Counted from the first letter of the stretch, positions 35,881-59,200 are shown. The stretch: 64,000 nt of DNA from Caecitellus pseudoparvulus (GCA_965644315.1 CBFFRQ010000068.1:186001-250000); one strand, 5' to 3'. A program made the numbers and translations. The notes: generated from the sequence alone by a model not told the origin.

Positions 35881-36008
35881 TCTACGGCCAGAATTACCCC
35901 AAACTTGTTTATGAATCACCTCTGTGAGCAATGCATGTGATGCCTCCGCGTCTCGCTTGAGCACCTGCTGCTGTGAGAGACAGCACGTTGGCAAGCAATT
36001 TCCGCAGC

Positions 36009-37442
36009 ATGGCCGAGGTCCACACAACAGCCAAAGCCAGCAGTGCTCCAGCGCCAAGCACACCACCTGCTGTGTTGATGGTGGGAACGGGTGAATACAC
36101 TACAGGGTACGGCGAGTCCTCTTCGAAAACGGACAAAGGGGCCGGAGGTGCGGCCTGCGAACCCGGCCGTCGCACTCCTGGCGAGCTGGCATGCACGCAC
36201 GCTTCCTCACCGAGCGCAGTGGTGGCAATCACGGTGTTTGACCTGCGCAAGCGCGGATTGGTCGGGGATGTCTACATGTGCGGCGTGAATGGCACGAAGT
36301 TCCCTGCCATTCGAGCCCACATGCAAGCCGCCATCGCGGAAGCCTACCCTCAACACGGGTTTGACATCTCCTGCGCCACGTTTCCTCCTGACGACCAGGT
36401 AGACCCACAAGCATACTTGACTGCCATAGATGCCCTGCCTGGCCGATCCATCGTCATCATTTTCACGCCTGATGATACCCACTTTGACATTGCCATGGCT
36501 GCGATTCGCAAAGGCCACCATGTGCTCGTGACCAAGCCCGCTGTCAAGACCCTGGCAGAGCACACCGCCTTGGCAGACGCAGCTCGGGAAGCGGGCAATC
36601 TGTGCGCTGTCGAAGTCCACAAGAGATGGGACCCGATGTACGCGGACGCGCGGGACCGCTTGCGGGCATCCGGTGACTTCTCGTTCTTGGATGCCTACAT
36701 GTCGCAGCCAAAGCTGCAGCTCAAGACATTCAAGTCGTGGGCCGGCATTGCATCAGACATTTCGTACTACCTGAACTCGCACCATGTAGACTTCCATGAG
36801 TGGTGCATGCAAGGGCGGGGGAGGCCGATTCGCGTGACAGCGAGCGCGGCCACGGGGGTGGGGCAGCGCCTGCTGCAAAGGCATGTCGATGACACCATCA
36901 CTCTGCTCGTCCAGTGGGAGAACCTCCCAAGCGGAACCCTTGGCACTGCCGTGTACACCGCCTCCTGGATCGCACCTTCAGCCGAGGTGCACTCCCAACA
37001 ACGCTTTTTCGCAATGACGCACGGTGGCGAAGTGAGGCTCGACCAGGCTCACAGAGGATACTCCGTAGCCACTGACAGTGCAGGGTTTGCCAGCGTTAAT
37101 CCTCTCTTCATGAAGTACACTCCCTCTGAAGGCACATTTGCAGGGCAAGGGGGGTACGGCTACCGGTCTTTCGAGGCCTTCATCCAGGCTGCAGTTGAGG
37201 TGAACGCGGGCAAAGCGCTTGCAAGTGACTTTGATGAGTCTGGGCAGCTGGCCACCATTCACTCCACGTTGCAGACGACTGCCATCCTCGAGGCGGGCGC
37301 TCGAAGCCTTGCTGCGGGCGGTCACCCTGTGACTATCCAGTATGAGTCTGCGACTGCCCTCCAGCCCCAAGCAGTGCAGCCACAAGACACCACAGAGAGA
37401 CCGCAGCGATCTTCCGATACAACGTCTGAGGCGGCTCCTTGA
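36009..37442 (+). CDS. Gfo/Idh/MocA oxidoreductase, D-galacturonate reductase (fungal GaaA)-like (~453 aa)
   Basis: Removing an in-frame 72-nt intron at 36148-36219 (GTGCGG...GCGCAG) restores [13 protein letters not shown]...[18 protein letters not shown]. Other motifs: [55 protein letters not shown]. Confidence 0.85.
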
Positions 37443-37852: not shown

Positions 37853-40800
37853 ATGCCTGGACTCAACGGGAAGTTGACAGTGCACCTGCACAAGGCCAAG
37901 GGACTCAAGAAGCCCAATGGCTCACCTCCTGGCCAGGTCATGGTGCAAGTGCTGGTCAATGGCGCCTCTGTGTCCGGCAAGGCCCACGAGGCTGCCGGCG
38001 CCGACTGGCAAGAGAGTGTGGCTCTCGACGTCGCCGACGCGCCCCTGGGCGCGACAGCCCGCTTCATTGTTGTAGATGTCAGTGGCGACTCTCAAGATGC
38101 CTTGGGCAGCGTGTCCATGGCCTTGCCTGACAACTCCTCCGCCGCCGGAGTCTTCGATGCCGCATGGCACGACGTCGTCGCCCCAGATGGCAAGAGTCTG
38201 GCAGGGCAGCTCAACTTTGGAATGGAGTGGGCACCCAAACGCGCCTCATCCAGGGGTTCGTCCCGTAAGTCTCGTGTGCGCGCACTGGCATCGCGTGCCC
38301 CGCTTCAGGGCAGGAAGAGCCGGTAAACGGAAATTGCGCGAGTCGCTGTGCGACCTTTCATGTGCGCCATGCGAAGCCAAGCTCGGCGCTGGTACAGCTG
38401 CATGGTCCCACACGTTCTCACAATACCTTGTTGCTCAGGAAGTGGTTCTCGAAGTGGATCCCGAGTGTCATCGGCCGTTGGCAGCCTGCGAGGCATCGAC
38501 GAGCGGAGCACGCTGAATGGTACCTTGACCGTGTACCTGAAGAAGGCACGAGACCTCAAGGACGCGGACTTCTTTGGCAAGTCAGACCCCTACGTTAAAG
38601 TGGCCGTTGCTGAGGTTCAGGCTCAGTCTAAGGTCGTCGAAAACTCCACCAACCCCGAGTGGAACGAAGACCTTAAACTCAAGATCCGCGGCGCAAGCTT
38701 GGGCGCCTTCATCCACATGCACGTGATGGATGAGGATGGCGAGAAGGATGGGTCCCTGGGCGAGGTGAAGGTGCCACTGCCTGACCACCCCGATGCGGCG
38801 GGCGTGTTCGAGGCTGTGTGGCAGCCGGTGGTGGACGAGAAGGGCAAGCAGCACGGGGAGCTGTTGGTGGGCTTCAAATGGGACCCGGTGTCGGCGCAGC
38901 GCAGGCGCAAGCGCGAGCGTGCAGCTGCACGTGCTGCCGCCGAGGAAGCGGCTGCTGCTTCTGGCTCCGGGGCTGGTGCCCAAGCCATCGATGAGCGCAA
39001 GACTCTAAATGGGACCCTCACTGTCTACTTAAAGGAAGGGCGCAAGCTGCCCACAGTTGACTCAAGAGGGCAGCTTGATCCCTTTATCGTGGTGGAAGTC
39101 GAAGAGAAGGCCGTGACGAGCAGTGCCAAGAAGAATACGTCTGCTCCAGTGTGGAACGAAGACATGGTTCTGCAGGTGCAAGGTGCCAAGCTTGGAGCCA
39201 CTATCGTCATGAGCGTGCAAGACAAGGCTCCTGCAGGAGACACAGCTGTCGGGAAGTGCAAGATTCCTTTGCCCGACCACCCGGATGCTGCTGGAGTGTT
39301 TGATCCAGTTTGGCAGCCGGTGACTGGACCAAAGGGTGGGAGTAAGGGAGAGATTCTGGTGGGCTTCAAGTGGGATCCGATCTCTGCGCAGAGAGAAAGA
39401 CGCAAATCGCAGGAAGAGCAGAAAAAGCAGCTTGCCCCTCCGCCCGCTGCTGCGGTCGCTGCTGCACCTGCCGCCGCGGCTACTGCCCCAGTGGACGAGC
39501 GCAAAACCCTCAACGGCACCCTCAAGGTCCAGCTCAAGAAGGCACGAGACCTCAAGGACGCGGACTTCTTCGGCAAGTCAGACCCCTACGTCATCACATC
39601 TGTCGCTGATGCCAAGGTGCAGTCCAAGGTCATCCAGGACTCCACCAACCCCGAGTGGAACGAGGAGCTCACTCTGCAGGTCAAGGGCGCGCCCTTGGGC
39701 GCCTTCATCCACATGCACGTGATGGATGAGGATGGCGAGAAGGATGGGTCCCTGGGCGAGGTGAAGGTGCCACTGCCTGACCACCCCGATGCGGCTGGTG
39801 AGTTTGCGCCGGTGTGGCAGCCGGTGGTGGACGAGAAGGGCAAGCAGCACGGGGAGCTGTTGGTGGGCTTCGAGTGGGATCCGGTGTCGGCGCAGCGCAA
39901 GCGCGAGGCCAAGGTGAGAAAGGCCAAGGCTGCTGCCGAAGCCGAAGCAAAAGAAGAGCGAGAGGCTAAAGCGGCCCAGCAGGCAGCGGAGAAGGAGGCA
40001 GCTGAAGCAGCAGCCGCGAAGGAAGCCGCAAAGCAAGCTCATGAAGAGGCTGCGAAGGCTGCAGCAGCCGCCGCTGCTGCTGCCCCAGTGGACGAGCGCA
40101 AAACCCTCAACGGCACCCTCAAGGTCCAGCTCAAGAAGGCACGAGACCTCAAGGACGCGGACTTCTTTGGCAAGTCAGACCCCTACGTCATCACATCCGT
40201 CGCTGATGCCAAGGTGCAGTCCAAGGTCATCCAGGACTCCACCAACCCCGAGTGGAACGAGGAGCTCACTCTGCAGGTCAAGGGCGCGCCCTTGGGCGCT
40301 TTCATCCACATGCACGTGATGGATGAGGATGGCGAGAAGGATGGGTCCCTGGGCGAGGTGAAGGTGCCACTGCCTGACCACCCCGATGCGGCTGGTGAGT
40401 TTGCGCCGGTGTGGCAGCCGGTGGTGGACGAGAAGGGCAAGCAGCACGGGGAGCTGTTGGTGGGCTTCGAGTGGGAGCCTGTCAGTGCACAGCGCAAGCG
40501 GAAAGCCAAGGAGGCTAGGGAGAAGGCGAAAGCAGCGCAAGCTGCTTCAGACAAGGAGGCAGCTGAGGCACGCGCAGCTGAAGCCGCTGCTGCCAAGGAG
40601 GCAGCCGAGGCAAAGAAAGCTGCGGAGGAAGCTGATGCTGCAGCTGCCGCCGCTGACCTTGAACGTGAGCAGAAGGAGGCGGCAGCAGCTGCCAAAGCTG
40701 CTGAGGAAGCAGCGGCCAAAGCAGCAGCAGAGAAGGAGGCTGCAGCAGCCGCCGCCGCTGCTGCCCCAGTGGACGAGCGCAAAACCCTCAACGGCACCCT

Positions 40801-43800
40801 CAAGGTCCAGCTCAAGAAGGCACGAGACCTCAAGGACGCGGACTTCTTCGGCAAGTCAGACCCCTACGTCATCACATCTGTCGCTGATGCCAAGGTGCAG
40901 TCCAAGGTCATCCAGGACTCCACCAACCCCGAGTGGAACGAGGAGCTCACTCTGCAGGTCAAGGGCGCGCCCTTGGGCGCTTTCATCCACATGCACGTGA
41001 TGGATGAGGATGGCGAGAAGGATGGGTCCCTGGGCGAGGTGAAGGTGCCACTGCCTGACCACCCCGATGCGGCTGGTGAGTTTGCGCCGGTGTGGCAGCC
41101 GGTTGTGGACGAGAAGGGCAAGCAGCACGGGGAGCTGCTGGTGGGCTTCGAGTGGGAGCCTGTCAGTGCACAGCGCAAGCGGAAAGCCAAGGAGGCTGAG
41201 GCAGCTGCAAAGGCTGCCGAGGCGGAGGCTGAGAAGCAAGCCGAAGAAGCCCGTGAAGCCGAGGCAGCTGCTGAGGCTGAGCGCGTGGAGGCAGAAGCCG
41301 CTGCTGCAAAGGCTGCGAAGGAAGAGGCTGAAGCCGCTGCCAAGCGTGAGGCGGAAGAGGCTGCAGAAGCGGAAGAGGCGGCTGCCCGTGAACGCGCAGA
41401 GGCTGAGGCAGCTGCCAAAGCTGCTGAGGAAGCGGCAGCGGCTGTTCAAGCAGCGAAAGAAGCTGAAGCAGAAGCTGCGAAGGCTGCAGCAGCCGCTGCT
41501 GCCGCTACCCCAGTGGACGAGCGCAAAACCCTCAACGGCACCCTCAAGGTCCAGCTCAAGAAGGCACGAGACCTCAAGGACGCGGACTTCTTTGGCAAGT
41601 CAGACCCCTACGTCATCACATCCGTCGCTGATGCCAAGGTGCAGTCCAAGGTCATCCAGGACTCCACCAACCCCGAGTGGAACGAGGAGCTCACTCTGCA
41701 GGTCAAGGGCGCGCCCTTGGGCGCTTTCATCCACATGCACGTGATGGATGAGGATGGCGAGAAGGATGGGTCCCTGGGCGAGGTGAAGGTGCCACTGCCT
41801 GACCACCCCGATGCGGCTGGTGAGTTTGCGCCGGTGTGGCAGCCGGTGGTGGACGAGAAGGGCAAGCAGCACGGGGAGCTGCTGGTGGGCTTCGAGTGGG
41901 ATCCGGTGTCGGCGCAGCGCAAGCGCGAGGCCGAAGCTACCAAAGCCAGGGCTGCCGAAGATGTGAAAGCTGCGGAGGCTGCCGCGAAAGAAGCTGCCGA
42001 GCTTGCGGCACGTGAGGAAGCGGAGGCTGTCGCTGCTAAGGAAGCTGCTGAAAAGGAAGCTGCTGAAAAAGAAGCCGCAGAGAAAGCCGCTGCTGAGGCT
42101 GCAGCAGCGGCTGCTGTTGCTGAAGCCGAGGCCCAAGCAAAAGCAGCTGATGCTGCACGCCGGGCCGAAGCGGAGGAGGCTGAGGCTGCCGCCAAGGCGG
42201 CCTTGAAGGCTGCAGAAGAAGCCGCAGCTGCAAAGGCGGCAGCAGAGGAGGAAGCTGCAGCTGCCCAGGCTGCTGCCGCTGCCGCAGCATCCTCGGATGA
42301 TCGTCAGAAGCTTTCAGGCTCCTTGAAGGTTCAGCTGAAGCAGGCCCGAGGCTTGAAGGATGCTGATTTTATCGGCAAGTCCGACCCGTATGTGATCGTG
42401 AAAGTCGGGGATGCCCAGGCACGCTCTTCCACGAAGGATGGCACCACTGAACCTGTGTGGAACGAAGAGCTACGGGTGGATGTTGAAGATGCCGACCTTG
42501 GTGCACCAGTGTACGTGTCGGTCTTCGACGACGACGGCGGCAAGGATGATGCTTTGGGTGAATGCCTCTTGCCGCCGCTGCCTCGCGATTACGATGCTGA
42601 GCACTCAGTGAAGGAGGAGTGGATTCCTGTCATGGTGCCGACGGGGAAGAAGGGGGCAGACGGAAAGCCTGCCTTGAAGCAGCAGGGCGAAGTGCTCGTC
42701 GGGTATGTGTGGGAGCCCGAGGCAGTTCAGCGTCAGAAGCAGGCTGACGCTGTGGCTGCGAAGGCAGCCGCAGAGGCCGCAGAAGCTGAGGCTGAAGCAA
42801 AAGCTGCTGCCGACCGGGCTGCTAAAGAAGCTGCTGAAGCTGAGAAAGCAGCACAGACAGCAACTCAGGAGGAAGCCACCTCTCAGCAAGTCCGCGAACT
42901 GGCCAAGACGGAGGCAGGCCGCGCTGTCCTTGCAGATGCTGCACCTCGTGATGCGTTGGGGGGCGACTACGCTGGGGCCGATGATGAGGCGCTGGCCGTG
43001 GACCCTTCCATCGATGAGCGCCAGACCCTGAACGGAGACCTGGACATCCACCTGGCGGAGGCACGAGGATTGCGAGACACAGATTGGCTTGGCTCCTCAG
43101 ACCCTTTCGTGGTTGCAAGCGTGGCTGGCTCAAGGAACCCTGATGCAGGTGCCACGACGCCGCCCGAGACCAAGTCAAAGGTAGTGAAGGGCACCTCCGA
43201 GCCAAAGTGGGACGAAGACTTGAAGCTACGCGTTCGGGGAGCTCCCCTTGGCAGCCAACTGCTCATGAAGGTGCGGGATGATGACGGAGATGGTAAATTC
43301 GATGAGCTGGGGCAAGTGCAGATTCCCCTGCCCGAAAACCCTGACGCTGCTGGTAACTTCGCTGAAACTTGGCATGATGTTGTCGACGCGAAGTCTGGCA
43401 AGAAAGCAGGCCAGGTGCGACTTTCTCTCGTGTGGACCCCGGTGACTGCCCTCCGCAAGGCGGCACAAGACGCTGCCGAAGCCCCCACCGCTGCTGATGC
43501 AGGTGATGGCAGCTCAAAGGAGGATGACAAGCCATTGACTGGCACTCTTGTACTGCGCGTGCAGGCCGCAAAAGATCTGAAAGACGCGGATTGGTTTGGC
43601 AAGTCTGATCCGTACGTGGTTGCGTCAGTACCACAGAATCCTAGCAAGGCCGGAACTGCAGCTGGCCCGGGTGCAGCTGAGAGCAAAGCCGCTTCTCCTG
43701 ATGGCGCAAAGAGCGGCGCCGGAAGTGAGGAGGCTGCAGGCCAGGATGGGCCCACTGCCCGCACGAGTGTCAAGGAAGGCACAACTTCCCCAGTGTGGGA

Positions 43801-46800
43801 CGAGACTCTGCGTGTGGCAGTGGACGAGGTAGCGCCAGCAGAAGTGGTCACGCTGGAAGTATTTGATGAAGATGGCAAGAAGGACACCCCTCTTGGCACC
43901 GTCCGTGTGCCCTTGAAGGACATCCCCGTGGGCCCGGAAGAGAAAGGAGACCCTGTGTGGTACCCTGTGCACACAGACCCCGATGGCAAGAAGCAACAGG
44001 GGCAGCTCTTGGTGGGCATGACTTTCTACCCGCCAGGGGAAGAGCCCAAGGCTGCAGCTGGTGAGGATTCTCTCGCTGCTGGCTTGGACCTGGGCGATGG
44101 CTCGGCTGCTCAGTCTGGCCTTGCTGATGAATCTGATGATGAAGATGCCGAGGCCAAGCAAGAGAAGGACTTGACTGGACAATTGACCGTGCACGTGCAA
44201 GCGGCACGGGGTCTGCGGGACGCTGACTGGGCTGGCACCAGTGACCCGTTCGTTGTGGTAAAGGTGGACGAAGCCGAGCAGAAGACCGCAACTGTCAGCG
44301 GCACCACCGAGCCCGTGTTCAACGAGACCATGCAGTTCCCACTCACAGACGTCAAGCGGGGCAGTGTGTTGACAGCTGAGGTGTTCGATGAAGACGTTGG
44401 GGGAGGGCATGACTCACTCGGCACGGTGCACGTTCCCTTGGACAAGGCCATTACTGGCACGGACAAGGGCGAAGCAGAAGCCAAGTGGTACCCTGTGTAC
44501 TCAGATCCAGAGCAAACGAAGCAACATGGTGAGCTTCTCTTGGACTTCAAGTGGGACCCCGCCTGGGAACCAAACAAGGCGGAGGAGGAGGCAGCGGCAA
44601 AGGCAGCAGCAGAGAAGGAGGCTGCCGAGGCGGAAGCTGCTGCCAAGGCAGCGGCTGAAGCTGCTGCTGCTGCTGAGGCAGCTGCAGCAGAGGCAGCTGC
44701 CATCAAGATTCAGGCAGCAGCCCGTGGCCGCATGACTCGTGCAGAGCTGGAGGCGCAGCGAGCAGCTGAAGCTGAGCTGGAGGGCGGCGGGGAGCCTGAG
44801 CCGCGGTATGAGGGCCCTGATGAGCTGGACACTGCAGCACAGGCAACGCAGGTGGGCTTGCCCGAAGATGGACGAGTTTCGGGGACGCTTCTGGTGCAGA
44901 TCATTGCCGGCCGGGGGCTGCCGGACTCCGACGCTGTTGCTGCTACCAAGGGAAGTCAGCCGGTGCCGAAGGTTGACGAGTCCAAGTGCGACCCGTACGC
45001 TGTGGCCACTGTGCTGGGCAGCGACGAGACAGTGCGAGGGGAAGCCGCACATGACACTAGCGACCCGTCGTGGGACAATTCGTACATGATCGAGGTGAAG
45101 GATGTTCCTGTTCGTGAGGCTGCGTTGCGGCTGGAGGTGTGGGACGAGGACACCGTCGCAGCTTCAGCAAGGAAAGCTGCAGCGGCAGAAGCAGAACGCA
45201 ACGGGCAGGCTCCGCCCACCGCCGATGAAGATGGTGCTGATGACTTGCTGGGCGCCGTAACTCTGCCACTCGGGGACTTCTTGTGGCACAACGGCGTGGT
45301 TGAGGGGGAACTCGTGCGGCCCAAGGATGACAAGGCAGGGGAGTGGGTGAACTTGCGTGCACCACCCCTTGGGGCCTCGCCGCACTATGGGGACGAGGTG
45401 GGCCTGGTCAAGATCGCGTATGCGTGGCAGTGCACAGAGCGCACGGGAGAGGGGGCTGACGAAGCAGTCCCCGTGCCCGGCATGACTGATGATGAGGCAG
45501 CTTCCAAGATTCAGGCGCTGGCCCGTGGACGCAAGACCAGGCGCGAGCTCGCTGAGGCAGAAGCTGAGCGGAAGCAGAAGCTTGCGGATGAGGCGGCAGC
45601 AGCCGAGGCGGCTGCGGCGGCCGCCGCACAAGCGCTCAAAGAAGAGGAGGCAGCCATCCGTATCCAGGCAGCAGCGCGCGGTCGCATGGGGCGCAAAGCA
45701 GCCGATGACGCCCGGCTGGCCAAGCTCCGCGCAGAGGCTGAAGCGGCACAGGCCGCCGCCGCTGCTGCAGCCGCCAAGCTCATGGCCGAGAAGGACCCTC
45801 TGAACGAGCAGGCCCGCCAGGCACAGCGCCTGCTGCCGAAAGACGCTGTGGTCTCGGGCAATGTCCTGCTGTCTGTCAAGGACGGTGCGGTTCCCGCTGG
45901 CGCCGCTCCCAAGGTGCGACCCTCCAAGGCAGACCCGTTCCTCCTCATGTACGTGCTGGGTACGCCAGAGCTTGCTCAGAGCGACACGGTCGCAGACACG
46001 ACTGAGCCGGTGTGGGATGGCACGTACATTGTAAAGGTGGAAGATGCCCGTGTGCGGGACATGGTGCTGCGCGTTGAGGCTTGGGACGAAGACACCGTGG
46101 CCACGGAAGCTCACACAGCCTCAGGTGCGCTGCTTCCGCGCGCGAGCGGCGCCCCGGGCGGGGGGCCCTTGCCTGGCCAGGAAGAGCCACAGGACAAGCT
46201 CCAGGGTGTGGCCGTGGTGCCGCTAGGTGCCCTCGCTTGGCACCAGGGTGAAGTGGGGGGAGACATTGTCCGGGTGGACGATGGTGCCATGCTGCGCCTA
46301 CCTCTACGCCAGCCCCTGCCCAACCCGAGCGGAGATCCGTCCAAGCAAGAGTATGGCGAGGACACCGTCGGCTTCGTGAACTTGTCATACGGCTGGCAAG
46401 CTGATAAGCGCGCTGGGGGTGGTATTGAGGACGCCAAGGAAAAGGCAGCCACGGCGCCGGAGGGCCCCGAGGGTGACGCTTTGCGTCAGGCCGCAGACCC
46501 AACCTTGCAGCATGCCCCACTCCTGCTGCAGACTCCGCTGGATGACAAGCTGCTGCTTGCCGTGGAAGATGCAGTGCAGGCCCCTCCGGGAGGTGAAGGG
46601 GACGCGGCTCGCGCGGCAGCTGTGAAGACAGCAGCCACTGGACGAGGCAAGGGCGCAGTCACGGTGTCCCTGCTCGAGGCAGACCGCGTGCCTGGAGTGG
46701 AGGACCCCAGGTCGAGAGGACCAGCTGGCAAGTGGTGTGTTGTACCTTTTGTCGGGCTGGCCTCCTCCACACCAGCTGTGGGTGGTGGAGAGGACCCTGC

Positions 46801-49279
46801 CATTGGCCCACACCGCCACGCAGGAGCTCCGCGCAAGGCGGCGGGGGGTGGTGCGCGGTGGCCGCAGGATTTCGTCCTGCCCGTCGATACGACGGCTCGG
46901 GACACGCCGCTTGCTGAAGGCGTGGTGCTGGTTGGTTTGGCACCCGCCGGCGAGGAGGGTGCCCCCGAGTCCGCGCCTGTGACTGCTGTGGCGGCTGTCC
47001 CTCTGGGAGCTCTGATGCAGGAGGAGGGGTCGACAGAAGGCCCCAGAGCAATCTCAGGCAAGTGGACCCTCTTGGACCCTGACACGCTGCAGCCGCTGGA
47101 AGATGGCGGTGATGTCACGCTGAATGTGGCGTTCAGCCCAGGGGACGATGCCTTTGACGATGCAGTGGCGTCAGGCGGCGCCGGGCCGGCGCCGGGGCCC
47201 ACCCCAGAAGAGCTGGCTGAGGAGGCCCAGCGCCGCGCAGCTGAAGAAGCTGAGGAGGCTGCCCGCAAGGCAGCGGCAGAGGAGGCTGAGGAGGCTGCTC
47301 GCCGAGCAGCAGCTGAGGAGGCTGCCCGCAAAGCAGCGGCAGAGGACAACCCTCCGAACCCAGACGAAACTGCAGCCGCCACCGGCGTGGATGCCTTCTT
47401 GGAGGGTGGCAGCCCAGAGGCCTCCCGGCGGTCCACCCGGAGCAGGCGGAAGAACCGGCACCAGCCACCGGAAGTGCCCGCTGAGGCCATGTTTGGTGTG
47501 GGGACGGGAGTGGGGACGGGGTACCCCAAGCAGCTGCTGCCGCACCGCACAGCAGAGGAAGTGGACGCCACAGCAGACCGCTTCCAGACGCCAGGGCCGG
47601 GCTCGTACGCGCCGACGACCGACGCCCGCGGCAAGAGCGTCGTCTTCGGCGCAGAGGCCTCCGCCCACACCGCGTCCATGTACACGACCGCCGCCGAGTG
47701 GGATTTGATTCGCCAGACCAAGGGCCAGCGGGCCATCTCCCCCGCTTCGGCTGCCGTCATCGCGACGTCCTCCTTTGCCCACACGCCGTATGCGCATGGG
47801 GAGGGGACCCGGCCCGTGAGCCGGGGACAACGCCAGGCCGGCACAGGCGTGTGGGGGCACGCCCACCCCAAGGGCGCCTTCTTCGGGTCCACTGCCAGGC
47901 CGTGGCAAGCGCCAGCTCAGGGTGACGGCGTGCCAGGGCCTGGCTCCTACGCGCACGCTGACGCGACAGGGCTGCCGTCTGGGGTGCGTGCTGCCAAGCG
48001 CAAGGTGCGGCGTCGCCGTGGCCCTGACGGCACTGTGCGCACTGAGTATGAGGGTCCCACCGCCGGCCGCAGTGTGGACAGCACCAAACGGAACGCGCCG
48101 GGGCATTCATTCGGCTCTGCGCCCCGCATGCCGCGCAACGCGTGGGGTGCCAACGAAGCGGGGCCCGCCCCTGGCGACCACCAGCACGCTGACCGAGCTG
48201 TGCCCAGTCTGCAGCGTGGCGCCCGGCGCAAGGCGGGTGGGAAGGCGCCCCGTTCCGGCACAGGCCGCAGCGTTCGAGAGCGCGCGGCAGAGCACCCCAT
48301 CGGGCGCGGTGTGGGTGCGCTCAGTGACCGGCGGCGCGCGCCTGGGTACTCCTTCGGGCGTGCTGCACGTGAAGGCCCACGCAACCGAGACAGGGAGACC
48401 TTCCCTGCGCCGGGCGTGCACCAGGGCCCTGGCTTCAACTCCAGCATCGGCGCCAGCGCGCACGATGGGCGCCCGGACACGGCCCCCGATGGGCACGGCC
48501 GCACTGAGTACGATGATTACTCGCGCTACCCCTCCAGTGAGAGCAAAGCCCCCACCCGCGGCTCGCTCAGTGCACGGGAGCGTGTGGTGGGGCACACGCC
48601 AGCTCCGACCTTTGGTCGCGCGCCCCGCGGCATCAACCCAGGCGATGAAGATGCCTATGTGATGGACCCATCCGCGTCGTCTGGTGTGCGTGCCGCGCGG
48701 GCATCGAAAAAGTACTACGACACAGGGCCGGCGCCAGGGGACCACACTCCCCAGGATGACATGCAGTCGGCGCTGCGGCAGTCTGCTGCCACCCGGCGTG
48801 GCGCCGCCACGTCCTTTGGAGCCGAGGCCCGCTTCGCGCCCTCTGCATCACAGCGGGACCAGGCGGCTATGCCTGGCCCGGGGGCGCACGACGCCCACCT
48901 CGTCATGGCTTCGGGTGACCCTCACCTGGCACAGGACACGACCGTCCTCGTGCCTGAGCGCCGCTCGCGCCACGCGCCACACCCACCGAGCACGACCTCG
49001 GAGCGGTACTCGCAGTCCTCTGTCGGGCGCGCACCCCCCCAGCGCTCGGGCCGCTCCATGCGCTCGACGGGCGCGTCCACGGCGTCCAAATTCGCAGCGC
49101 CGCCAGATGGCGCAGCTCGCGAGTATGTCGTGCGCCCGGGACACGCCGCTAGCTCTGCCAGCCCCAGCCGGGGCCGGCGGCCGCCAGCGTACTCCTTTGG
49201 TACGTCCACTCGGGAGCACCCTTTCCTGAGTGAGGGTAGGGAGAAGTCGTATGGCTCGGCGTGGAAGCCCAGGCTGTAG
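37853..49279 (+). CDS. Giant (~3750 aa) multi-C2 domain protein with IQ motifs and C-terminal SHIPPO/PGP (ODF3-like) repeats
   Basis: Exon 1 is 37853-38264 (a C2 domain), the intron 38265-38438 (GTAAGT...CTCAG) and exon 2 38439-49279. It has about 14 C2 units (LKDADFFGKSDPYV...NPEWNE...MDEDGEKDGSLGEV type) with Glu/Ala/Lys helical linkers. Three IQxxxRGxxxR motifs lie at ~44700, ~45500 and ~45655, and PGPGSY/PAPGDH repeats at 47588-48889. Confidence 0.88.
39485..41932 (+). repeat. Four near-identical ~420-bp intragenic repeats, each encoding one C2 domain
   Basis: Copies begin (gtggacgagcgcaaaaccctcaac) at 39491, 40088, 40769 and 41513, giving spacings of 597, 681 and 744 nt, all multiples of 3. 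They differ at only a few sites and are separated by divergent EAAAK-type linkers. Much of the C2 at ~38540-38900 shares the same DNA sequence. Confidence 0.95.
47216..47345 (+). repeat. Coding tandem repeat encoding EEAARKAAAE-type single-alpha-helix units
   Basis: EEAQRRAAEEAEEAARKAAAEEAEEAARRAAAEEAARKAAAE, with repeated gctgaggaggctgc units. Confidence 0.75.
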
Positions 49280-49345
49280 AGGCCTGACAATGCAACGTGA
49301 CCTCGTGAGCTGACCATGGCGTGGGTGCTGGACAGGAGCGTGCAT

Positions 49346-49861
49346 TTACAAGGCACCGTCATTGTGGCGCAAGAACTTCGACCGCGGCATGCCAGTTGAC
49401 AGGCCAGACGTCCTATAGTTTCCGCTAGACGCAAACTCCTGTGCAGCCAGAGACGCAGGCAAGCTGAGCCGCGCCAGCCGGCCAGCCTCACGCAACCGCT
49501 CACCTTTGAGAAACGCCCGTGCTTCGCATGCTTTGGCTTTTCCACAACATGAACCACGCCTGTTGGAACGACCCCGTAGCTCCCGGATGAGGTTTGGTAT
49601 AGGGGGTGCTGCCTTTCCTTCTTCTGCTTGTAGTACTCTGTCGCAAAAACGCCCGCAAGGATGAAACGCAACCGAAACTTCTCCGGGCTACGGGCAGCCA
49701 CCCAACGCACCGAACTTCTCTTCCAGAGTCAGCTCATCATACGACTTTTCCATCGGCTGAGTCGCCGCAAGGTACTCCTTCATAGCTTCAGGAACCTCAT
49801 GGGGCTGCTGCCCAGCAGCAGTTGCGCTTGTCGCTTGCGCTGCGCCTGGCTCGGATGCCAT
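49346..49861 (-). CDS. PIERCE1: PIERCE1/PIERCE2 (FAP182)-like ciliary microtubule inner protein (125 aa)
   Basis: Exons 49861-49711, 49637-49504 and 49438-49346, with GT-AG introns of 73 and 65 nt. The product contains QHPLYQTSSGSYG...HGRFSKEFASSGNYRTSGLST, matching the Piercer pattern. The ORF track does not show it as a single ORF. Confidence 0.8.
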
Positions 49862-50248
49862 TGCCAGGTGTAGCCAAGGGAGTGGGGCTTCTATCTCGAA
49901 GACGAGAGCGTGCAGTTGTTGAGCGGTAGAGGTTGTGTGTGGGCGTTGTTCCGAGTGTTTTTGTCGATCGCTTAGAATGGTAATACGTAGCTTGCGATGC
50001 CAGTATTGGACCAAATTTGGCCGTGCGTGCAGCACATCATGCTCTTTGCTTTCTTCGCAGAGGGCAAGCGTTGGGACCCACTTCGCGTGCTCTTTGCAAC
50101 AACAACGAATACAGCAAATCCCCACAACCCAAGAGTTCCTAGCCGCGCACCCGGCAGGCCTTGCCTGCGGTTCGAGGGGCTGTTGGGCCGCGCCGCCTCT
50201 GCAGGCTTGTGCGAGAGGCGTGTCTGTGACCTGGCTCGCTGAGCCAAG

Positions 50249-53200
50249 ATGGCCAACTTGCAAGCATGTTTGGAAGAAGCGAAGGAACTGGTCACAGGCT
50301 CTAAAGAAGCCGATGCTTCCTCTCAGTTCAGGCTTTCATGCCTTTTGGAAGCTGCCTTTGGGGAGCTGCACCAGGTCAGCGCCAAGGTGTGTCTGCGGAA
50401 GTAGGCCGGGCCATCCTCTGCAGCTTGCAAGACACCTTTCTGCCGTCTGCCTACATGCAGGACATCAAGGGCAGCATCTGCAACACCCTCACAGAGTGCC
50501 ACGATGCATGTCTGACTGAGAGGGGCCTCACTTTCCTCTGCAGAGCCAGTCGGTCATCCCTGGCCCGAGTTGCCGCAGCGGCCTGTGGTCTTGCTGCTGA
50601 TGGCTCTCGGCGTGGCGAGGCACTGCTGCAGCAATGGACGCGAACTGCATTCGAGCGGAGCAGCTCACCGGCCCTGAAAGCGTGTGTACTGCGCCTCAAG
50701 CGTGCTCTCGCCACCCTCGCTAGCAAGCTGCTCCGCCCTTGCGCAGCCTGAGCTTGGAGCTGCTGGGCGCCTCCCTCTCACATGGCTTGGCTGCTGCGGT
50801 GAGCCGCAAGGCAGTCGCAGCCTTGGTCGTGCCACTGACCAAGGCACTGAAGTCAGCAGGCCCAGAGGCACTGGTTGGTGCCACTGTGACTGCCCTCGCT
50901 GCTGTGCTGCAGGCGCTCGAAGCTCAGCCTGACCCGGCCCTGGACCTGAGCGCTTGCTTGGGCTCGTTGTGCAGCGTGGTGACCAAAGACAAAGCGTCAG
51001 CGGCACTCAGACGATCCGTTGGCAGTGCGCTCACCGCTGCTGTTCCGGCGGTGCTTGCCAGTGGTTGGCGAGCTGCGGGGGCCTGGAAGTCTCTCCCGCC
51101 CAAGGGGTCCACGGACGCTCCGCGGACAGGCATGTTCGACGCCGCCCCCGTCCCTGCGCCGGGGTCCACCACCGTGCCAGGGGCAGCCACTCACATCGTT
51201 GAGGCGTGCCTGGCTGGGATGTGCGCTGCAGAGCCCGGCGTGCGGCGGGTGTGGGCTGCCACGTACGCAGGGTGGCTGGCCGGCAGCGTCCTGCACAGCT
51301 TGAAGCACGGCGCAGGCGGACTGCAGGGCGGGGAGACGCCGCCTCGTGAAGCACAGGACGGAGAAGGGAGCGATGATGACGCTGAGCCCGACAGGCCTCT
51401 GGACCTCCCTGCAGCTCTGGTGGCTGACGCGCACGCCTTTGGGCTCACACCGAGTGCGTGGGCGAGGCTGTGGGGCATGGACGCAGGCAGCGCAGACCGA
51501 GCCCGCCACCGAGACATGTCCGTGAGAGCGAGTGCTGGGAGTGCAGATGGGGATGCAGGCACGCCCGGCTCTGCCTTCGCTGGGGCTGTGAGCACTGGGC
51601 AGTCCACCAGCGACAAGGCAGCAGTGTCGCAAGGACACAGGCGGGGGTCGGATGCTGGTGCTGGCAGCACATCAGGGTCAACGTCCCGGCTAGGCCGACT
51701 TGGAGGCCTGTTCTCCCGCAAGAAGCGCGGGCTGGACGCTGCCTCCCTGCAGCAATTAGAAGCAGCCGCCTGGGTACGGGGGCTCGCTCCCCACCAAGCG
51801 CTCCTGCTCATCTCATTCCATATGCGGGCTGGCCCCCCTCCCAGCTCAGTCAGCCAAGGGTGGGCCACCATTGACGGTAAGTCGGGGGGGCCAGGTCACG
51901 GAGCAGCCTTCAGGGGATCTGGCTGGGGCGGCGGCGCTGTGCTGTCAGCTGCGGCGCAAGCAGCACACCCGGCAGCTGCCAACCCAGCTGCTCAGCAAGC
52001 CATGTTTTTGCAAGCCTTGGGCTTGGCAGCGACGCTCTTTCTGCGCAGCGTGCGCATGGATGCCATGCAGCACGCTGACGGCACGCTACCGCTCGTCTTG
52101 CTGGCCACGCTGCGGTGTGGGTTGTCTCCACGCCCTGCCGTCTGCACCCAGGCGCTGGCTGCTTCCGAACGCCTGGGAGCCTCTCTTGGCGCCCCAGGAG
52201 CTGGATTGCTCCTGGCTGGGGATGCAAGTGCCGGGAGTGACGTGTTTCACCCCCCCCCTGGCCCCTGTGACGGGGCTCCATGGGGCACGTCCCCCCTTGG
52301 CGAGGATGTAGAGTGGGGCACTGCCGGGCCACTCGCTACTCTCGCTCGCGCAGGCTGCGTCAACATGGTGCAGCGCGGACTCTTGGCAAGTCTGGGGAGC
52401 CCCGGGAGCAAGGACAGCCCGGGCTGGTGCATGTGGGTCGACACATTGGTGCAGCACTTGTTGGAGGCTGTTCTGCGGGGCCTGCGGTGGGGCTTCGCTG
52501 GCGATGTATTTGGACTGTCTGACACTTGCCCAGCCCCCAGCGTCCTCTCTCCCGTGGCAAGCTGGGAGCAGGGGCGAGGAGGTAGGCCGCTGGGCCCTGC
52601 TTCCTCTGCCGGGGCTTGCTCCGGCGGGCTACGTCGCAACCACCCAGCAGAGGCTTCCTGTGTGCTCCCTGGGACAGGGACGCCAGCTGAGCTCGCTGCC
52701 ATGGCTCCAGCCATGCCCTGGGCGGAGGGTCTGACACCCAACATGTGGCTTGCCGCATGCAGCGCGCTGTTGGCTGCGCTACCACACGCATCGGCCGCAG
52801 TGGCCTCGTCCTCATCGGGGGCCTTGCTTTCCCACTTACTGCCGTGTTCCTGCGTGGCGAGCAGCCTGCTCCCACCCGGGGGACGCGTGTGTCTGAACCC
52901 AGCTGCACGGATTGCGCGGGTAGCTGGAGGGGCTGCACCGATACCGCAGCTGCCCTTCACCGATGCAGCTGCCGTCGCTCCCGGCGATGCGCCTCTTTCC
53001 CACGTCTTTGCTTCTCCGATCCCCGCGATTGCCAGCGCTGGGTTGTCTTTGCTGGCCTGGGCGCTTCCTCACCATGTCACTGCAGTTCCCGCAGTTCTGC
53101 GGGTCGCCCTTTCCACGTGTACTGGCCTCGCCTCTCTCGTGGGGTCAGAGACATTCCATGCTTCCGCTGCAGCTGCGGCGGCTGCCTCTGTCATGTCTCA

Positions 53201-56200
53201 AGCCAAGCAGCACGGCTTTGTGTCAGGGCCTGGATCCAAGTCAGGCGCTTCTTCCGACAACACATCAGGTACGGTCCCCCTGCCGCCTTCACCCGACTGT
53301 GGTCCTTTCCAAGGGCCTGCTGCAGCTACAGGGGGGTTCAGCTGCCCTGGTTCCACAGGCGGAATGGCCAGTGGCTTGTCGGCCCTGCAAGCGCCAGAAG
53401 CAAGCAAGCTGCGCCAACTGGTGGGCGCGGCAGCAGTGGTGGCCTGTGCCGTCGGCGCATGCGTACATGCTGGCCCGCTTGCCATAGCAGCGCCTCGCAT
53501 CCAGGAGGCCGCCCTTGTTTGTGTGGCGGGGGCGCTGCCAGGTATTCTGGACGCAGCGGTGCAGCTGGTCACAGCGCATCGAGGCGTGTCACCCGCCTTC
53601 GCTGGTGGGGAGGTCGCCGCCATCGGGGCAGCGTTGCCAGGGGGGGTGAACGAGTCAGGCGTCGTCCCGTGGACGAGTCATGGCACAACGCCCAGCGGAG
53701 CTGCCTGGGCCACAGTAGCAGCAGATGCCGTGCGAGCCGAAGTGGCTGCTGCGTGTGGAGTGGCTGGGTGGAGACTTTGGGCAGCGCTGGCCTTGGCCCC
53801 TCGAGCCTGGTGGGCAACAGATGATCGTTCCCGCACATTTGCTCGCTTGCTGGAAGTCGAAAGTCGGTGTCTGCACGAGGGGCAGGAACCAAGCAGCGAA
53901 GACATCCATGCATTGTCGCCGCTGGCTGCAGGCACACTGAGGCTGTTGGTGGGAGCCCCTGGGAAAGGGCCAAAGCCTGGTCAATTGCGCGATACGCTGG
54001 CCACTATCGGCCCGTCTACTAGCTGCTCCGGCCCTACCGATCCCAGTTGCCTGACCTTTGAGTCGCTGGTTCGTGCACCGGTTGCTTGGAGGTGGGTTGC
54101 GGTGGCTTCAGCGGCTCGAGCAGCAAGCCTCATGCTGCACAGGCACGGTGCCACCCTTGGCCAGATCGACTCCACCTGGCTTGGCCCCTTCATGAATGCC
54201 TTGACTCACACAACGTCCCTCCTGACTGCTGGGGTGGCACTGCCCGGGTCTGCGTCTGCCATGCTAGCAGATGGATCACCTGGCTCGGGAGGCAAAGAGG
54301 CATCACCACACCCTCTACCAGCTGCACTATCAGCACACTTGGCGTCCAGTTGGGCTTGCCCGGCGATCCGCCTCGTGGGGGAGGGCGTTCGTCACGTCGC
54401 AGGGGTGATGTTGGCCGCCGTCGCTGCTCTGCCGGTCACGGCCCTGGGGGCGTCGCCAGCTGCCCTGCGTGCCCACGCGCTGCATGCCTCGATAACGAGC
54501 ATATCAGGCGGTTCTGTCCAACCAAGAGCGAAGTCCAGCCCATCTCCCCGGCCTGTAATGTCTGCTTTGGGGCTCTCCCTCCGCGTGTGCCTCGGCGTGC
54601 CAGAGACACCAGTGGAGGCCTTGTCCCTATTCCCAGCGGATGCAGTGCTGGGTCTTGGGCAAGCTTCAGTTGCTCCGCCGGGGCAGACATACTGGAAGGC
54701 TGCTCGCCTGGCTCTGGCGGCGGCTGGTCACCCGCTGGGAGCTGGTGCGTCGCCGGGCACTGCGTCTGGAGGAGCGTGGCCGCTGCCAGATCCCGTCTTG
54801 GGCGCGGGGTCCAGCCCTGAAGCCGGGCACTTTTCTCCTGTGCATGCAAGGCTCTTCACCCTTGACCAGCCATCGGGTGGGTGTGCTTTTGATCAAAGTT
54901 GGGGGGTCTGGACTGGAGCGCTTCCCCCCACGCTGCACTGTCCGCCCCCTCACTTGCTGGGCAGTCCCTCGAAACTTCCAGTTGGTTTGCGGCACGGCGT
55001 GGAAGTGAGCGCTATTCTTTTGGCATCAACTGCGCGGACATCTCTTGTGCAAGCTGGAGCTGTGCAGGCGTGCCCCAGCCACGCACGAGCTGCCACTGCT
55101 TTGCACAAGTTGCTCCCCAGCGGCACGTTGATCGGCGTTGGTAGCGCCGGTGAAGTCACATGGGACGGTGTCCTGTCCAGCCTTGCACTGCCAGACGCGA
55201 GGGGCGTGCAACCTGGGGTTTGGGGATTGACACCCCCTGAGTGGCTGAACGAGCACTCCTGGAGCCAATGCTGGGCCCTGCATTCCTCGCGGCTGTCCGC
55301 TCAGTCGAGCAGCGCCCGCCTTGGGGCTGCTGCTCTGGCTGCAGGGACAAAGCTGTTGTCCAAAGCGACAGACCAAGCGAAGCATGCCCTGCTGTCAGCG
55401 CTGCTGTGGCCCCTGAAGCCTGCAGGTGCTCGCGTCGCTGCCGCTACTTCGGGGCGCTTCACCCTGCACCCAGACGTTGCTGTAGGCCCTGCTCGGACGC
55501 TCATCGCTCGACTAGGGGTGGCGGCGGTACTGCAAGTGCTCGCAGACACGACCAATCTCGAGCACAAGGCAGCATCACCTTCCCCCTTGCCGCCCTGGCT
55601 GCCTGCTGTGCGAGGCATGCTGGGGGCCGGGGTGGGCCACGTGGATGTTGCTGTGCGGCGGGCCTCGGCGCAGGCACTGGGGGAAGTTGTTCGCCTCGCA
55701 GGGCATGTTCGTGGAATGGCCCAGCGCCTGCTCACCACCGTGCACAAGCAACTTGAAGCGGGAAGCGACATGTCTTCGGCAGTTCACTCGGGCGCGCTGT
55801 TCGCTCTTGCAGCAATGCTGCGTGGTGCGCGCGCTGTTGGTGGCCGCCGAGGGGTGCACCTGGACACTGCATGCGTGCAGAATGTTCTAGCCACTTTGTT
55901 TAAGGCTTGCACAGAGGTGAAGCAGCCGTTGCGGAGTTGGGCGCTTCACTCGTGGGTTGTCGCCTTGCAGAGCTTGCCTCCGCGGCTGTCCAGTGAGCCG
56001 TACGTTGCGTCGACCCTCTCGTTGCTCGAGGCACACACCGTTGCCTCGGGGGCCGTTGGTGCCGACCCCCCACCTTGCTCATTCATCGACGATTCAGCCT
56101 GTTCAGCAGCCGGCAACAGCGTGTGTGTACTGTCCCAGGGCGCCAGCGCGGCGGCGGGTGCTGTGTTCGAAGGAGGCGCCGCTTCGGGGCACTGGTTGTC

Positions 56201-59200
56201 CTCACCACTCCTCGGAGCAGAGGGGGGGGCCATCCTTCTCGCCAGTGCCCTTGACCCCCTTCAATCCGCAAGCCCCTGCTGCACTGCTGCCGGAGCAGCC
56301 TTCTCTCTTGTGGCAGAGAGCTCGTCGCTGCTGCACAAGGAGCGCGGGGAAGCACTCGCGCGCCCTGGGCTTCAAGGCGTGCTGGACGTAGAGGCAGCTG
56401 GCCCAGATGGCGGTGGAGCTTGTGGCGCCGGTCAGTTTACTCAGATGCGTCTGGCCTGCAGTGTGCTGCACTGCCGAGCCTTGCAGTGGGCCGTCATGGC
56501 GCTGGGCCCTGCTGCCGCCAACACCGCTTTGCAACAGGGCAGTTCCCTGGAGCATGCAACTAAACTGGCAGGGCTGTGGTCTGGAATCGCACTGGGTGAC
56601 GACGGGCACCTCCCTCCAGTTTCAGCTGCTGCGCTTGGCGTTTTACGTGCGTGGGTCCTCATGGCCCCGAGCTTGCTGCCTGCTGGACTGCAGCTGCTGG
56701 CCGCCAGGGCCACAGCGATGGGGGAGACTGGTGCTTCAATGGCAAGGATCGGCCGCCAGTCGCTTTGCTGCTCAGACCAGCAGCTCCGCCAATTTCCCAT
56801 TCCTGGCACGCTACTGGCATTGGTGCGCAGCTGGGGCGCCAACGTCGTGCCTGTGTCCGACTCGATAGCAGGGGGTGATCGCCTGCCCACCCTGTGGCGG
56901 GGTGAGTGCGATGGCCGGGTCTGGTGGGCGGCTGTCCAGCGCAAGCCCCCCAGCTGCGCGCTTGAGATAGGTCTCGCCACAGGCGCCTTGCCCTTCCTGG
57001 ACGCCATGAATGCTCCAAGCTCACAGCAGGGCACAGCAAGAGGTTCTGCTGAACCAGCCGAGGCCGATGGGGGTGGAGATGCAGCAGGCATGATTGCCAG
57101 TGAGGGTGGTGCAGTTGCAGAGGCGCACATAGCGAGTGGCGCCGCTGCAGCCCTGCGGGCCCATGGTGCGGTGGAAGGCGCGGCGGCAGCTGCCATGGCC
57201 GCTTCTGGGGCAACACAGGACAGCAAGAGGCACTGCCCTGCCGCTCGGGCGTCAGTCTTTCTTGGCCTCTTGTGCAGTGTGGATGGAGACGGCTTGACCT
57301 CAGCTCCCGCCCGTGCCGCATGCCTCTCCTGGTACTTCAGCATTGCTCAAGGTATCCTGTCCACTGCCCCCACTGTCCTGCCAGGAGTGAACGTTCCGGC
57401 CCTTGTACATAAGCCCAGGGCCACTGCATCGACGCTGAGCGGATTTGTTCTATTAGGTGGCTCCCTGCGTGATTTGCTGCAGGCGGACACGCTTGCCGCG
57501 CTGGGGGAGGGCTTGCGGCTGGTTGAGGGGCTGGAGTCAGTGTCTGGCTGTGTCGCTGTGCAGAGCGCTTGTGGGGGGATGGCGTTGGCTCTTGTGGCTC
57601 CTACACACCCGGGCAGCGGCGCTGTGGTCGCGGCCGGGCTGGCCGGGTATCCCGATTTGACAGTGGAGCACAAGGCCTCTGCGTGTGCTTTCCTCACTGG
57701 CACTGGGACATCGATACGCATCGATGAGCCAGCTTCAGTTGCTGAAGTCGTTTTCGGCGGTGCTGCTGGCCAACCCAGTGTGCCAGCTCCACACACTGCA
57801 TCCCTGCTACAGGTTGCGGCCATGGCTGCGGCGTCTGTGCTGGGCGTTGGACTCGCAGGAAGCACGCGATTGACTGATTCACACCAGTTCAAACTCACCA
57901 AAGCTGCTGTCGCTCATCCGGCGGCGTTGGGGGCAGCGGACAGAGCCGAGCTGATGCTCGCGTCCACTCAACTTGCGTGGGCATGCAAGCCAGACGATGG
58001 AGGCGGCGGTCGTGTTGCCCCTCCTGTTTTGCAAGTGGGAGAACACGCGCTTTCGACCGGGGACAGCAAGCTGGCTCCTGGCTCGGCGGGAGTGGATACC
58101 CCAGCCGAGGTGCTTGGCGTGCGACCTGGGTGTTTTGGAAGCCTGACAGGTACTTCTACCGGCTGGGCAAACCTGCTGCACCTCTCTGCCAAACGAAAGC
58201 CCCTGCCAGTTGCTGCGTCAAGTGGCTCAGCCACACGGGAAGCAATTGCAACTGCAGACCCTTTGGCAGAGGGAGGTTCGCCTCTTGCTGCTGTGCTTCG
58301 CCAAGGACACGCCTGCGTTGTCACGAGCCCAACGCTCAACTTGGCAGTTGCCACGCACTCAGTCTTGGGGTCTCTGCCAACTTGTTTGCTTCCAACTGTT
58401 GTGGAACTGTGTGCAGCAGGAGCGCTGCTCCCGGCATTGGCTCTGGCAGAGTGGTCCCACCGCCCGGGCAAAGGGGCTTCACAGCCAGGGCGTGCCCCAC
58501 AGCCCCAAGCTGCCGTCACTCCTTTGCTGGAAGGCTTGCTGCAGGCCATCAGCGCCCTGCTCAGCCAAGGGGACACCGCAGGCGGGGACCTCGGAGGGGT
58601 TGCCGAGGAAGGCGCCAGCGCCGGGCCCGGCCTCAGCCTGAGTGACCTCGGCGATCTGGGTGCCGACCTGCAGGCAGAGGAAGCCGTGGAGCCCCCTCCC
58701 GATCCCGCCACGGGCGAGGGGCTCAGTGCACGTGGTGAGGCCACGGCTGTCCCGGCATGCGTTGACCGCCAGCTTGCCATGGCTGTCGGCTCCATGGCCC
58801 TGCAGTGGGTGCTGGCTGCAGCTGCAGCTGAGCCTGGGGCACCTCCCCTTGCATGGCCACGCTCGTCCAACTCCCTGCGCCGCAGTGAGCCCCACCTCGC
58901 TTCGATGCTGCCTCACCTGGGCGGGGAGGGCACAGGCTCGTGGGCAGCGCCTGCCCATCGTGGGGCCCTCCTTGCGATTCTTTCTAGCGGGGGCCTGACA
59001 TCCCGGCGCTCCCGCCAGAAAGCCGTGGCTGCTTTGCAAGCTGCAGGTGCTCCGAGTACTGGCTGGACTCCAGGGCCGCTGGGCAGACCTCGCGCATCAG
59101 CGGTGTCGCTGCATGTGCCAGCCTCATCTTGGGCCGCAAGAGCAGCTTTGCATCTTGCGTGTGCAAGCTCGCCCGCTCTCTCGCACCATCTGCAGCAGCT

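Follow-up and report, generated by a model that had tools for sequence, protein, structure and literature searches.

We describe a gene from the flagellate Caecitellus pseudoparvulus predicted to encode, within one polypeptide, an array of C2 domains separated by helical spacers, three IQ motifs and a basic, PG-rich tail of the SHIPPO type. It occupies positions 37853-49279 of a stretch of 64,000 nucleotides (GCA_965644315.1 CBFFRQ010000068.1:186001-250000), here called the window, on the + strand, as do all features of the gene given below; the C2 units are numbered C2-0 to C2-13 from the N-terminus. The encoded protein (the giant protein) combines known modules into a domain architecture that is new and is conserved in at least two species. 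A literature search for C2 together with SHIPPO or STPG returned nothing relevant, the architecture was not found described, and protein database searches recovered no protein of comparable length sharing the tail or the region of the IQ motifs and atypical C2 domains. An earlier interpretation of this DNA from its sequence alone (the sequence-only reading) had known of no described protein with this architecture, in agreement with the outcome of both the literature and the long-protein searches.

Conservation of the fusion

A metagenome scan seeded with the conserved C-terminus of the tail identified an ortholog in a second species, on a contig (L025) with an open reading frame (ORF) of at least 2,624 amino acids (aa). 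This ORF starts at the edge of the contig and continues in one open frame to the C-terminus shared with the giant protein. It is 51% identical to the giant protein over 2,678 aligned columns, an alignment that takes in units C2-6 to C2-13 with their spacers and IQ motifs and goes on through linker and tail, with regional identities of 47-67% for the C2 domains, 62-64% for the IQ spacers, 53% for the linker and 59% for the tail. All three IQ motifs are retained, and in the tail the ortholog keeps the six PG motifs with their His variants, the SFG half-repeats and the final 20 residues.

Between strains, a scaffold from a public metagenome (L006; ENA ZHEN20-1 scaffold_533) is 99% identical when compared with window positions 41793-59279. 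Its tail region shows 19 synonymous differences, confined to third codon positions, and a single non-synonymous one; upstream of the tail there are 18 synonymous and five non-synonymous differences, and the indels are in frame. As judged from these comparisons, the fusion of C2 array, IQ motifs and tail is real and under purifying selection, because L025 has all parts in one frame, the changes in L006 are mostly synonymous and conservation is even along the protein. A public 630-aa protein that appears to consist of the tail only (P0004) derives from L006, and we rejected it as a separate gene since it is cut by a 100-N scaffold gap.

On a practical matter, L006 begins inside the near-identical C2 repeats and its 100-N gap lies in an Ala/Glu repeat, at ~47290, indicating that these repeats break short-read assemblies; the number of C2 copies may therefore be variable, or collapsed in assemblies.

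Gene model

Between the ATG at 37853 and the stop codon at 49277-49279, translation of the frame meets a single in-frame stop, at 38324-38326. This stop falls within a 174-nt segment (38265-38438) that is bounded by GTAAGT...CAG and, its length being a multiple of three, leaves the reading frame continuous on either side. From its sequence the segment is probably an intron, and it appears typical for the organism, since the introns of the calmodulin gene in the same genome (73-145 nt, GTACGT/GTGCGT...CAG) are similar in splice-site style and size. The spliced model has 3,750 aa and two exons: exon 1 (37853-38264) starts at the ATG and codes for C2-0, and exon 2 (38439-49279) comprises 3,612 codons plus the stop codon and is otherwise free of stops. 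This agrees with the sequence-only reading, which had proposed one polypeptide of ~3750 aa, the frame being open save for the predicted intron. Alternatively, translation could start at an ATG within 38265-38438, the sole cost of which would be the loss of C2-0. The gene is single copy in the genome, in which GC content at third codon positions (GC3) is uninformative as a periodicity test of coding potential.

The calmodulin gene itself (L012, G000:C69:1208680-1209417) has at least four exons in an otherwise intron-poor genome, and a search for an intronless calmodulin found none.

The C2 array

Exon 1 and exon 2 were searched separately rather than as a joined spliced sequence. With Pfam C2 (PF00168, cut-off 22 bits), exon 1 contains one domain (23.4 bits) and exon 2 twelve stretches (712.6 bits); the units C2-0 to C2-12 were then placed by a hidden Markov model built from the array's own units, together with alignment. 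The array begins with C2-0 (~37862-38245), whose Ca2+ loops are degenerate, and continues with ten typical units, C2-1 to C2-10 (38510-44575), starting at 38510, 39002, 39506, 40103, 40784, 41528, 42308, 43025, 43532 and 44168. These are followed by two atypical units with long inserts, C2-11 (44858-45400; 56% identical to L025), where the inserts extend loop 1 and follow the WDEDT strand, and C2-12 (45833-46390), which is without the first loop-1 Asp. A candidate degenerate unit, C2-13 (46508-47155), is probably a fourteenth C2-like beta-sandwich in which the acidic loops are absent. Its AlphaFold model is of low confidence (pLDDT 57.6), and with Foldseek the best matches to this model come exclusively from C2 domains (among them dysferlin C2A, E 6.5e-4), in a fold test that is partly circular as the input alignment consisted of C2 paralogs. 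Thirteen Pfam domains and one probable degenerate unit make the 'about 14' C2 domains of the sequence-only reading a fair count.

For the typical units, the nearest solved structures in a sequence search of the PDB are the C2A domains of dysferlin and myoferlin, Syt7, MCTP2 and E-Syt2, and AlphaFold models C2-3 and C2-4 as two beta-sandwiches (pLDDT ~90). In C2-1 and in C2-3 to C2-10 the five acidic loop residues of this type are present, in the pattern D-x-D...SDP[YF] and D-[ED]-D...D, together with aromatic or hydrophobic loop-1 tips. The loop tips of the typical units read FF, FI, WL, WF or WA, and both the acidic residues and the hydrophobic tips are kept in L025 over the shared units C2-6 to C2-10. 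By their loops the typical units would therefore belong to the synaptotagmin/ferlin-type, Ca2+-dependent lipid-binding subtype. The array as a whole is acidic, with an isoelectric point (pI) of 4.8.

Units C2-3 to C2-6 are nearly identical, with 4-10 differences per 393 nt, and the spacers between them vary in both length and sequence. Outside the array, C2-0 is the closest C2 to the array unit in the 30.6-Mb genome (E 9.7e-17 versus 8.5e-12 for the next locus). The units do not correspond one-to-one to those of L025 (window 41528-42733 versus L025:30-1600): the L025 unit opposite C2-6 is closer in appearance to C2-7, and the following one to the C2-1/C2-3 type. From these alignments, the array appears to evolve by turnover or conversion of units while spacer length is kept.

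IQ motifs and helical spacers

Each of the three IQ motifs fits the consensus IQxxxRGxxxR, and together they score 42.4 bits with Pfam IQ (PF00612, cut-off 20.3), in line with the number given by the sequence-only reading. The first (IQAAARGRMTR, 44708-44740) was found both by Pfam and by the consensus and is one of those kept in L025. The second and third (45509-45694, with cores at 45509-45541 and 45662-45694) lie in a helical, Ala/Glu-rich spacer. Complete IQ motifs usually bind calmodulin-type light chains.

The spacers measure, in order, 33, 37, 68, 96, 117, 129, 97, 25, 41, 94, 144 and 39 aa, and the long ones consist of Ala (~50%), Glu (20%) and Lys/Arg (15-20%). Five long Ala/Glu/Lys spacers connect C2-3 to C2-8 (39899-43024), namely 39899-40102 (68 aa), 40496-40783 (96 aa), 41177-41527 (117 aa), 41921-42307 (129 aa) and 42734-43024 (97 aa). 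Ala/Glu/Lys helices of the EAAAK kind form stable monomeric helices. In an AlphaFold model of C2-3, its spacer and C2-4 (mean pLDDT 85), residues 127-188 form an unbroken helix of 62 residues (pLDDT 84-92), so that composition and model agree with the Glu/Ala/Lys helical spacers proposed earlier. Alignment of the spacers to L025 requires only 0-3 gaps, and none for the 129-aa spacer; this nearly gap-free alignment between orthologs indicates a constraint on spacer length.

The giant protein contains no transmembrane helix, its highest 19-residue Kyte-Doolittle mean being 1.39, and no signal peptide, its N-terminus not being hydrophobic; on both counts the sequence-only reading had come to the same result.

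The PG-rich tail

A linker (47156-47488), in which a helical Ala/Glu/Arg repeat is combined with a basic stretch, leads, in open frame, from C2-13 to the basic tail (47489-49276; pI 10.6). As the sequence-only reading had described, the tail carries six PG motifs that alternate with xSFGxxxR half-repeats. The PG motifs start at 47591, 47933, 48164, 48404, 48728 and 48872, with one half-repeat after each, and the tail ends in the conserved sequence RGRRxPAYSFGTSTREHPFL. When the giant protein and L025 are compared, conservation within the tail is highest at the PG and SFG motifs, those with His among them, and the two PGPGSY motifs are identical in both.

Scanned alone, the tail scores 29.7-30.5 bits with Pfam SHIPPO-rpt (PF07004, cut-off 20), a signal that is distributed across several of its sub-segments, and three of the four tail homologs match the SHIPPO profile at E<=1. 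Among the neighbours of the tail in the ESM-Atlas, the best named clusters are SHIPPO-rpt families in 30 of 30 cases (score 0.91-0.92). Stand-alone SHIPPO proteins of the canonical kind, encoded elsewhere in this genome, reach 57 and 44.6 bits, compared with ~30 for the tail, and BLASTP between the tail and a canonical SHIPPO protein of this genome yields similarity at the level of motifs only (E 0.012). Since the variants of the PG motif are kept in the ortholog, we regard the tail, by its motifs and profile matches, as a divergent member or subtype of the SHIPPO family.

Cryo-EM has identified PGPGxY as a microtubule-binding motif located in the outer wedge between protofilaments, and in STPG1A these repeats are ~40 aa apart, matching the 8-nm tubulin repeat (PMC10105768). 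SHIPPO proteins also occur on non-axonemal microtubule arrays, such as the Giardia disc (10.1101/361105).

Of the canonical stand-alone proteins, one of 552 aa (57 bits) is present at three loci (L001, L002 and L003, on G000 contigs C159, C8 and C35). Two of these loci, oppositely oriented, are 99.5% identical over 3 kb, pointing to a recent duplication or to haplotigs left uncollapsed.

Proposed function and alternative explanations

How could these modules work together? The reading we favour, tentatively and with slightly less than even confidence, is that of a multivalent, Ca2+-tunable link between membrane and microtubule. The basic tail would lie along an axonemal, flagellar-root or cortical microtubule, with its six PG motifs docked in the grooves between protofilaments as in STPG/ODF3L proteins. 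The acidic N-terminal array would present about ten Ca2+-competent C2 domains, spaced out along the chain by Ala/Glu/Lys helices that are stiff and fixed in length, and upon a rise in Ca2+ their aromatic loop tips would insert into an anionic membrane. The three IQ motifs, flanking the atypical C2-11 and C2-12 near the tail, could recruit calmodulin-type light chains that either add a second Ca2+ input or stiffen the IQ segment. The result would be a soluble, very elongated protein joining membrane and microtubule in the manner of a zipper rather than of a single strut. The genome encodes radial-spoke proteins, from which we infer that the organism builds a motile axoneme. No tektin match was found in the genome, in a search that the control genomes cannot validate.

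Several observations weigh against such a link. On the C2 side, the full acidic loops are absent or partial in C2-0, C2-2, C2-12 and C2-13. In ciliary and centriolar proteins such as CEP120, the ligands of the C2 domains are proteins or tubulin and not lipid, and C2-13 has CEP120 C2 domains among its fold matches. On the tail side, the canonical PGPGSY occurs in only two of the six PG motifs, the other four being His variants (PAPGxH or PGPGxH), and the motifs follow each other at intervals of 114, 77, 80, 108 and 48 aa, where ~40 aa would be expected. The whole-protein scan gives SHIPPO a score of 19.5 bits, just below the cut-off of 20, the tail of L025 falls short of E 0.01 for SHIPPO, and searches of the PDB by sequence, with the tail itself and with a profile of four tail sequences, matched no solved axonemal protein. 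Of the SHIPPO repeats claimed by the sequence-only reading, what holds is the score of the isolated tail and the identity of its Atlas neighbours, but not a clear whole-protein score, a regular spacing or, for four of six motifs, the canonical Tyr. Its proposal of a Ca2+-regulated tether likewise survives in part, favoured by the C2 loops, the SHIPPO signal of the tail and the conserved fusion, and weakened by PG motifs that are mostly non-canonical and score marginally.

Two other functions can be considered, each of which we find unlikely. The protein might be a Ca2+ sensor or scaffold bound to microtubules, with a role for instance in the flagellar beat or in root-fibre mechanics, in which the array and the light chains bind proteins or reshape the molecule with Ca2+ and no membrane is tethered. 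The ciliary and centriolar C2 proteins CEP120 and RPGRIP1, which act in protein or tubulin binding, are found among the fold matches of C2-13, the acidic array could interact with the basic tail, and the conserved, fixed spacer lengths would fit the structural role of a ruler; the typical units, however, have the complete acidic Ca2+/lipid loops and aromatic tips of synaptotagmins and ferlins, unlike the CEP120 type. Equally improbable in our view is a tether between two membranes, or a vesicle tether or coat, in which the tail would be disordered and, instead of microtubules, would bind acidic lipids, some other protein or the array of its own molecule. This would account for the prevalence of His variants, the irregular spacing, the marginal SHIPPO scores and the failure of the tail to match solved axonemal proteins, but sits poorly with the conservation between orthologs, which is highest at the PG and SFG motifs and complete in both canonical PGPGSY motifs, and with language-model neighbours that are uniformly SHIPPO families.

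Finally, the fusion might exist only as an ORF, with two separate products made from the locus, either because the tail is started at a conserved internal Met (47489) or because unseen splicing ends the C2/IQ part upstream. The stand-alone-looking tail homologs in L007 and L026 start near the equivalent position, L025 keeps the Met that precedes MFGVGTG, and the public 630-aa gene call spans the tail only. The latter is, however, an artefact of the scaffold gap, whereas the linker is open, 53% identical and built like the other spacers in two species, and the indels between strains are in frame; we thus regard two products as very unlikely.

If the proposed membrane-to-microtubule link is correct, the giant protein would reveal a new mode of coupling membranes to the microtubule skeleton under the control of Ca2+, in a field in which the way that flagellar and cortical membranes are held to microtubules in protists is poorly understood. 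The gene also offers a natural series, graded in length, of rigid EAAAK-like helical spacers, and the conserved His variant of the PGPGxY motif provides material for structural study.

Origin of the architecture

With the tail as query, an exhaustive HMMER scan against 1.84 billion representatives returned only the giant protein itself and one other protein (P0005, encoded on L007). This protein and a further homolog on L026 have the same order of motifs and the same C-terminal motif as the tail, and no C2 sequence is found upstream of either (1.3 kb for L007/P0005, 0.4 kb for L026). On these short contigs, and thus provisionally, the tail family seems to exist elsewhere as separate proteins of ~500 aa. 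Because the tail homologs of L007 and L026 look stand-alone, a lineage-specific gene fusion is suggested: the architecture probably arose, in the lineage of C. pseudoparvulus, when a stand-alone PG-rich gene was fused to the gene of a C2/IQ array. With stand-alone tail homologs apparently existing elsewhere, the gene would serve as a clear case of gene fusion.

Neighbouring genes

Upstream, at 35973-37442 (+) and ~410 nt from the ATG of the giant gene, lies a gene for a GFO/IDH/MocA-type oxidoreductase (45.2 bits). A short ORF at 49402-49710 (-) is arranged tail-to-tail with the giant gene and has a weak match to Pfam PIRC1_2, the family of the microtubule-inner-protein Pierce (18.4 bits, cut-off 27). 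The next giant open frame follows directly on the 3' side, at 50739-60827 (+); with 3,362 aa and faint matches to TPR_LAA1_C (14.7 bits) and TAF6_C HEAT (11.2 bits), its product is probably, from these matches, a large protein of the HEAT/ARM type. No LHC match was found in the genome, which, with its radial-spoke proteins, looks like that of a heterotrophic flagellate. A trypanosomatid origin, at first suggested by the long ORFs free of introns, was rejected in view of the spliceosomal introns.

Comparison with known systems

A whole-protein search for long relatives recovered three giant proteins with C2 domains only (P0001, from Prymnesium parvum, P0002 and P0003). In the size range of 2,000-6,300 aa, no proteins other than these match the array, and P0003 has 13 Pfam C2 stretches; unlike the giant protein, however, they have no IQ motifs, PG motifs or Ala-rich helical spacers, and they are 24-32% identical to it over 3-18% of the query.

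A second giant gene is located ~823 kb downstream on the same contig (G000:C68:1072900-1086500, - strand; L010 and L011), with open frames of 3,168 and 959 aa. Like the gene described here it combines a giant ORF with a Pfam IQ match (30.1 bits), and it contains a highly regular repeat of ~173 aa that is C2-like but without acidic loops; a Pfam scan of it detected neither C2 nor a dynein stalk or microtubule-binding domain. We rejected it as a close paralog, the best BLASTP match having an E of 0.006 and lying in the IQ motif, and it represents at most an analogous design. A broader proposal, which we find doubtful, would make the two genes members of a class, not recognised before and present in this protist lineage, of giant, soluble, Ca2+/calmodulin-controlled zippers between membrane and microtubule, assembled at least twice from IQ motifs and an array of C2-type domains on single helices of fixed length, once with the PG tail and once with candidate dynein-type microtubule-binding domains in the second giant, with the His-for-Tyr PG motif as a new lattice-binding variant of SHIPPO.

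Among characterised proteins, the ferlins (dysferlin, myoferlin, otoferlin) likewise unite multiple Ca2+/phospholipid-binding C2 domains in a single long chain, and the C2A domains of dysferlin and myoferlin are the best solved matches to the repeat unit of the giant protein. Ferlins, however, have 5-7 C2 domains, FerA/DysF modules and a C-terminal transmembrane anchor, whereas the giant protein has ~14 C2 domains, neither a transmembrane segment nor any of the ferlin Pfam families (FerI/FerA/DysF), and adds IQ motifs and a PG-rich tail. On the side of the tail, STPG1/STPG2 and ODF3/ODF3L share the PGPGx[YH] repeats followed by xSFGxxR, the basic character and, probably, the form of an extended chain. 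In general, the PG-rich repeat proteins known so far form small filaments along axonemal microtubules, and those of the STPG/ODF3L type are stand-alone proteins with spacers of ~40 aa, whereas here the repeats occupy the C-terminal 600 aa of a giant protein, at a spacing of 48-114 aa and with four motifs in which His replaces Tyr.

A further parallel is found in the extended synaptotagmins, tricalbins and MCTPs, in which arrays of C2 domains act as Ca2+-regulated tethers and whose members E-Syt2 and MCTP2 provide some of the top sequence matches to the C2 domains of the giant protein. These proteins are anchored by membrane hairpins or transmembrane segments, and E-Syt has an SMP domain for lipid transfer in addition, neither of which was detected in the giant protein. 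Known multi-C2 tethers connect one membrane to another and are anchored by transmembrane segments; in the giant protein, by contrast, the second anchor would be a microtubule instead of a membrane.

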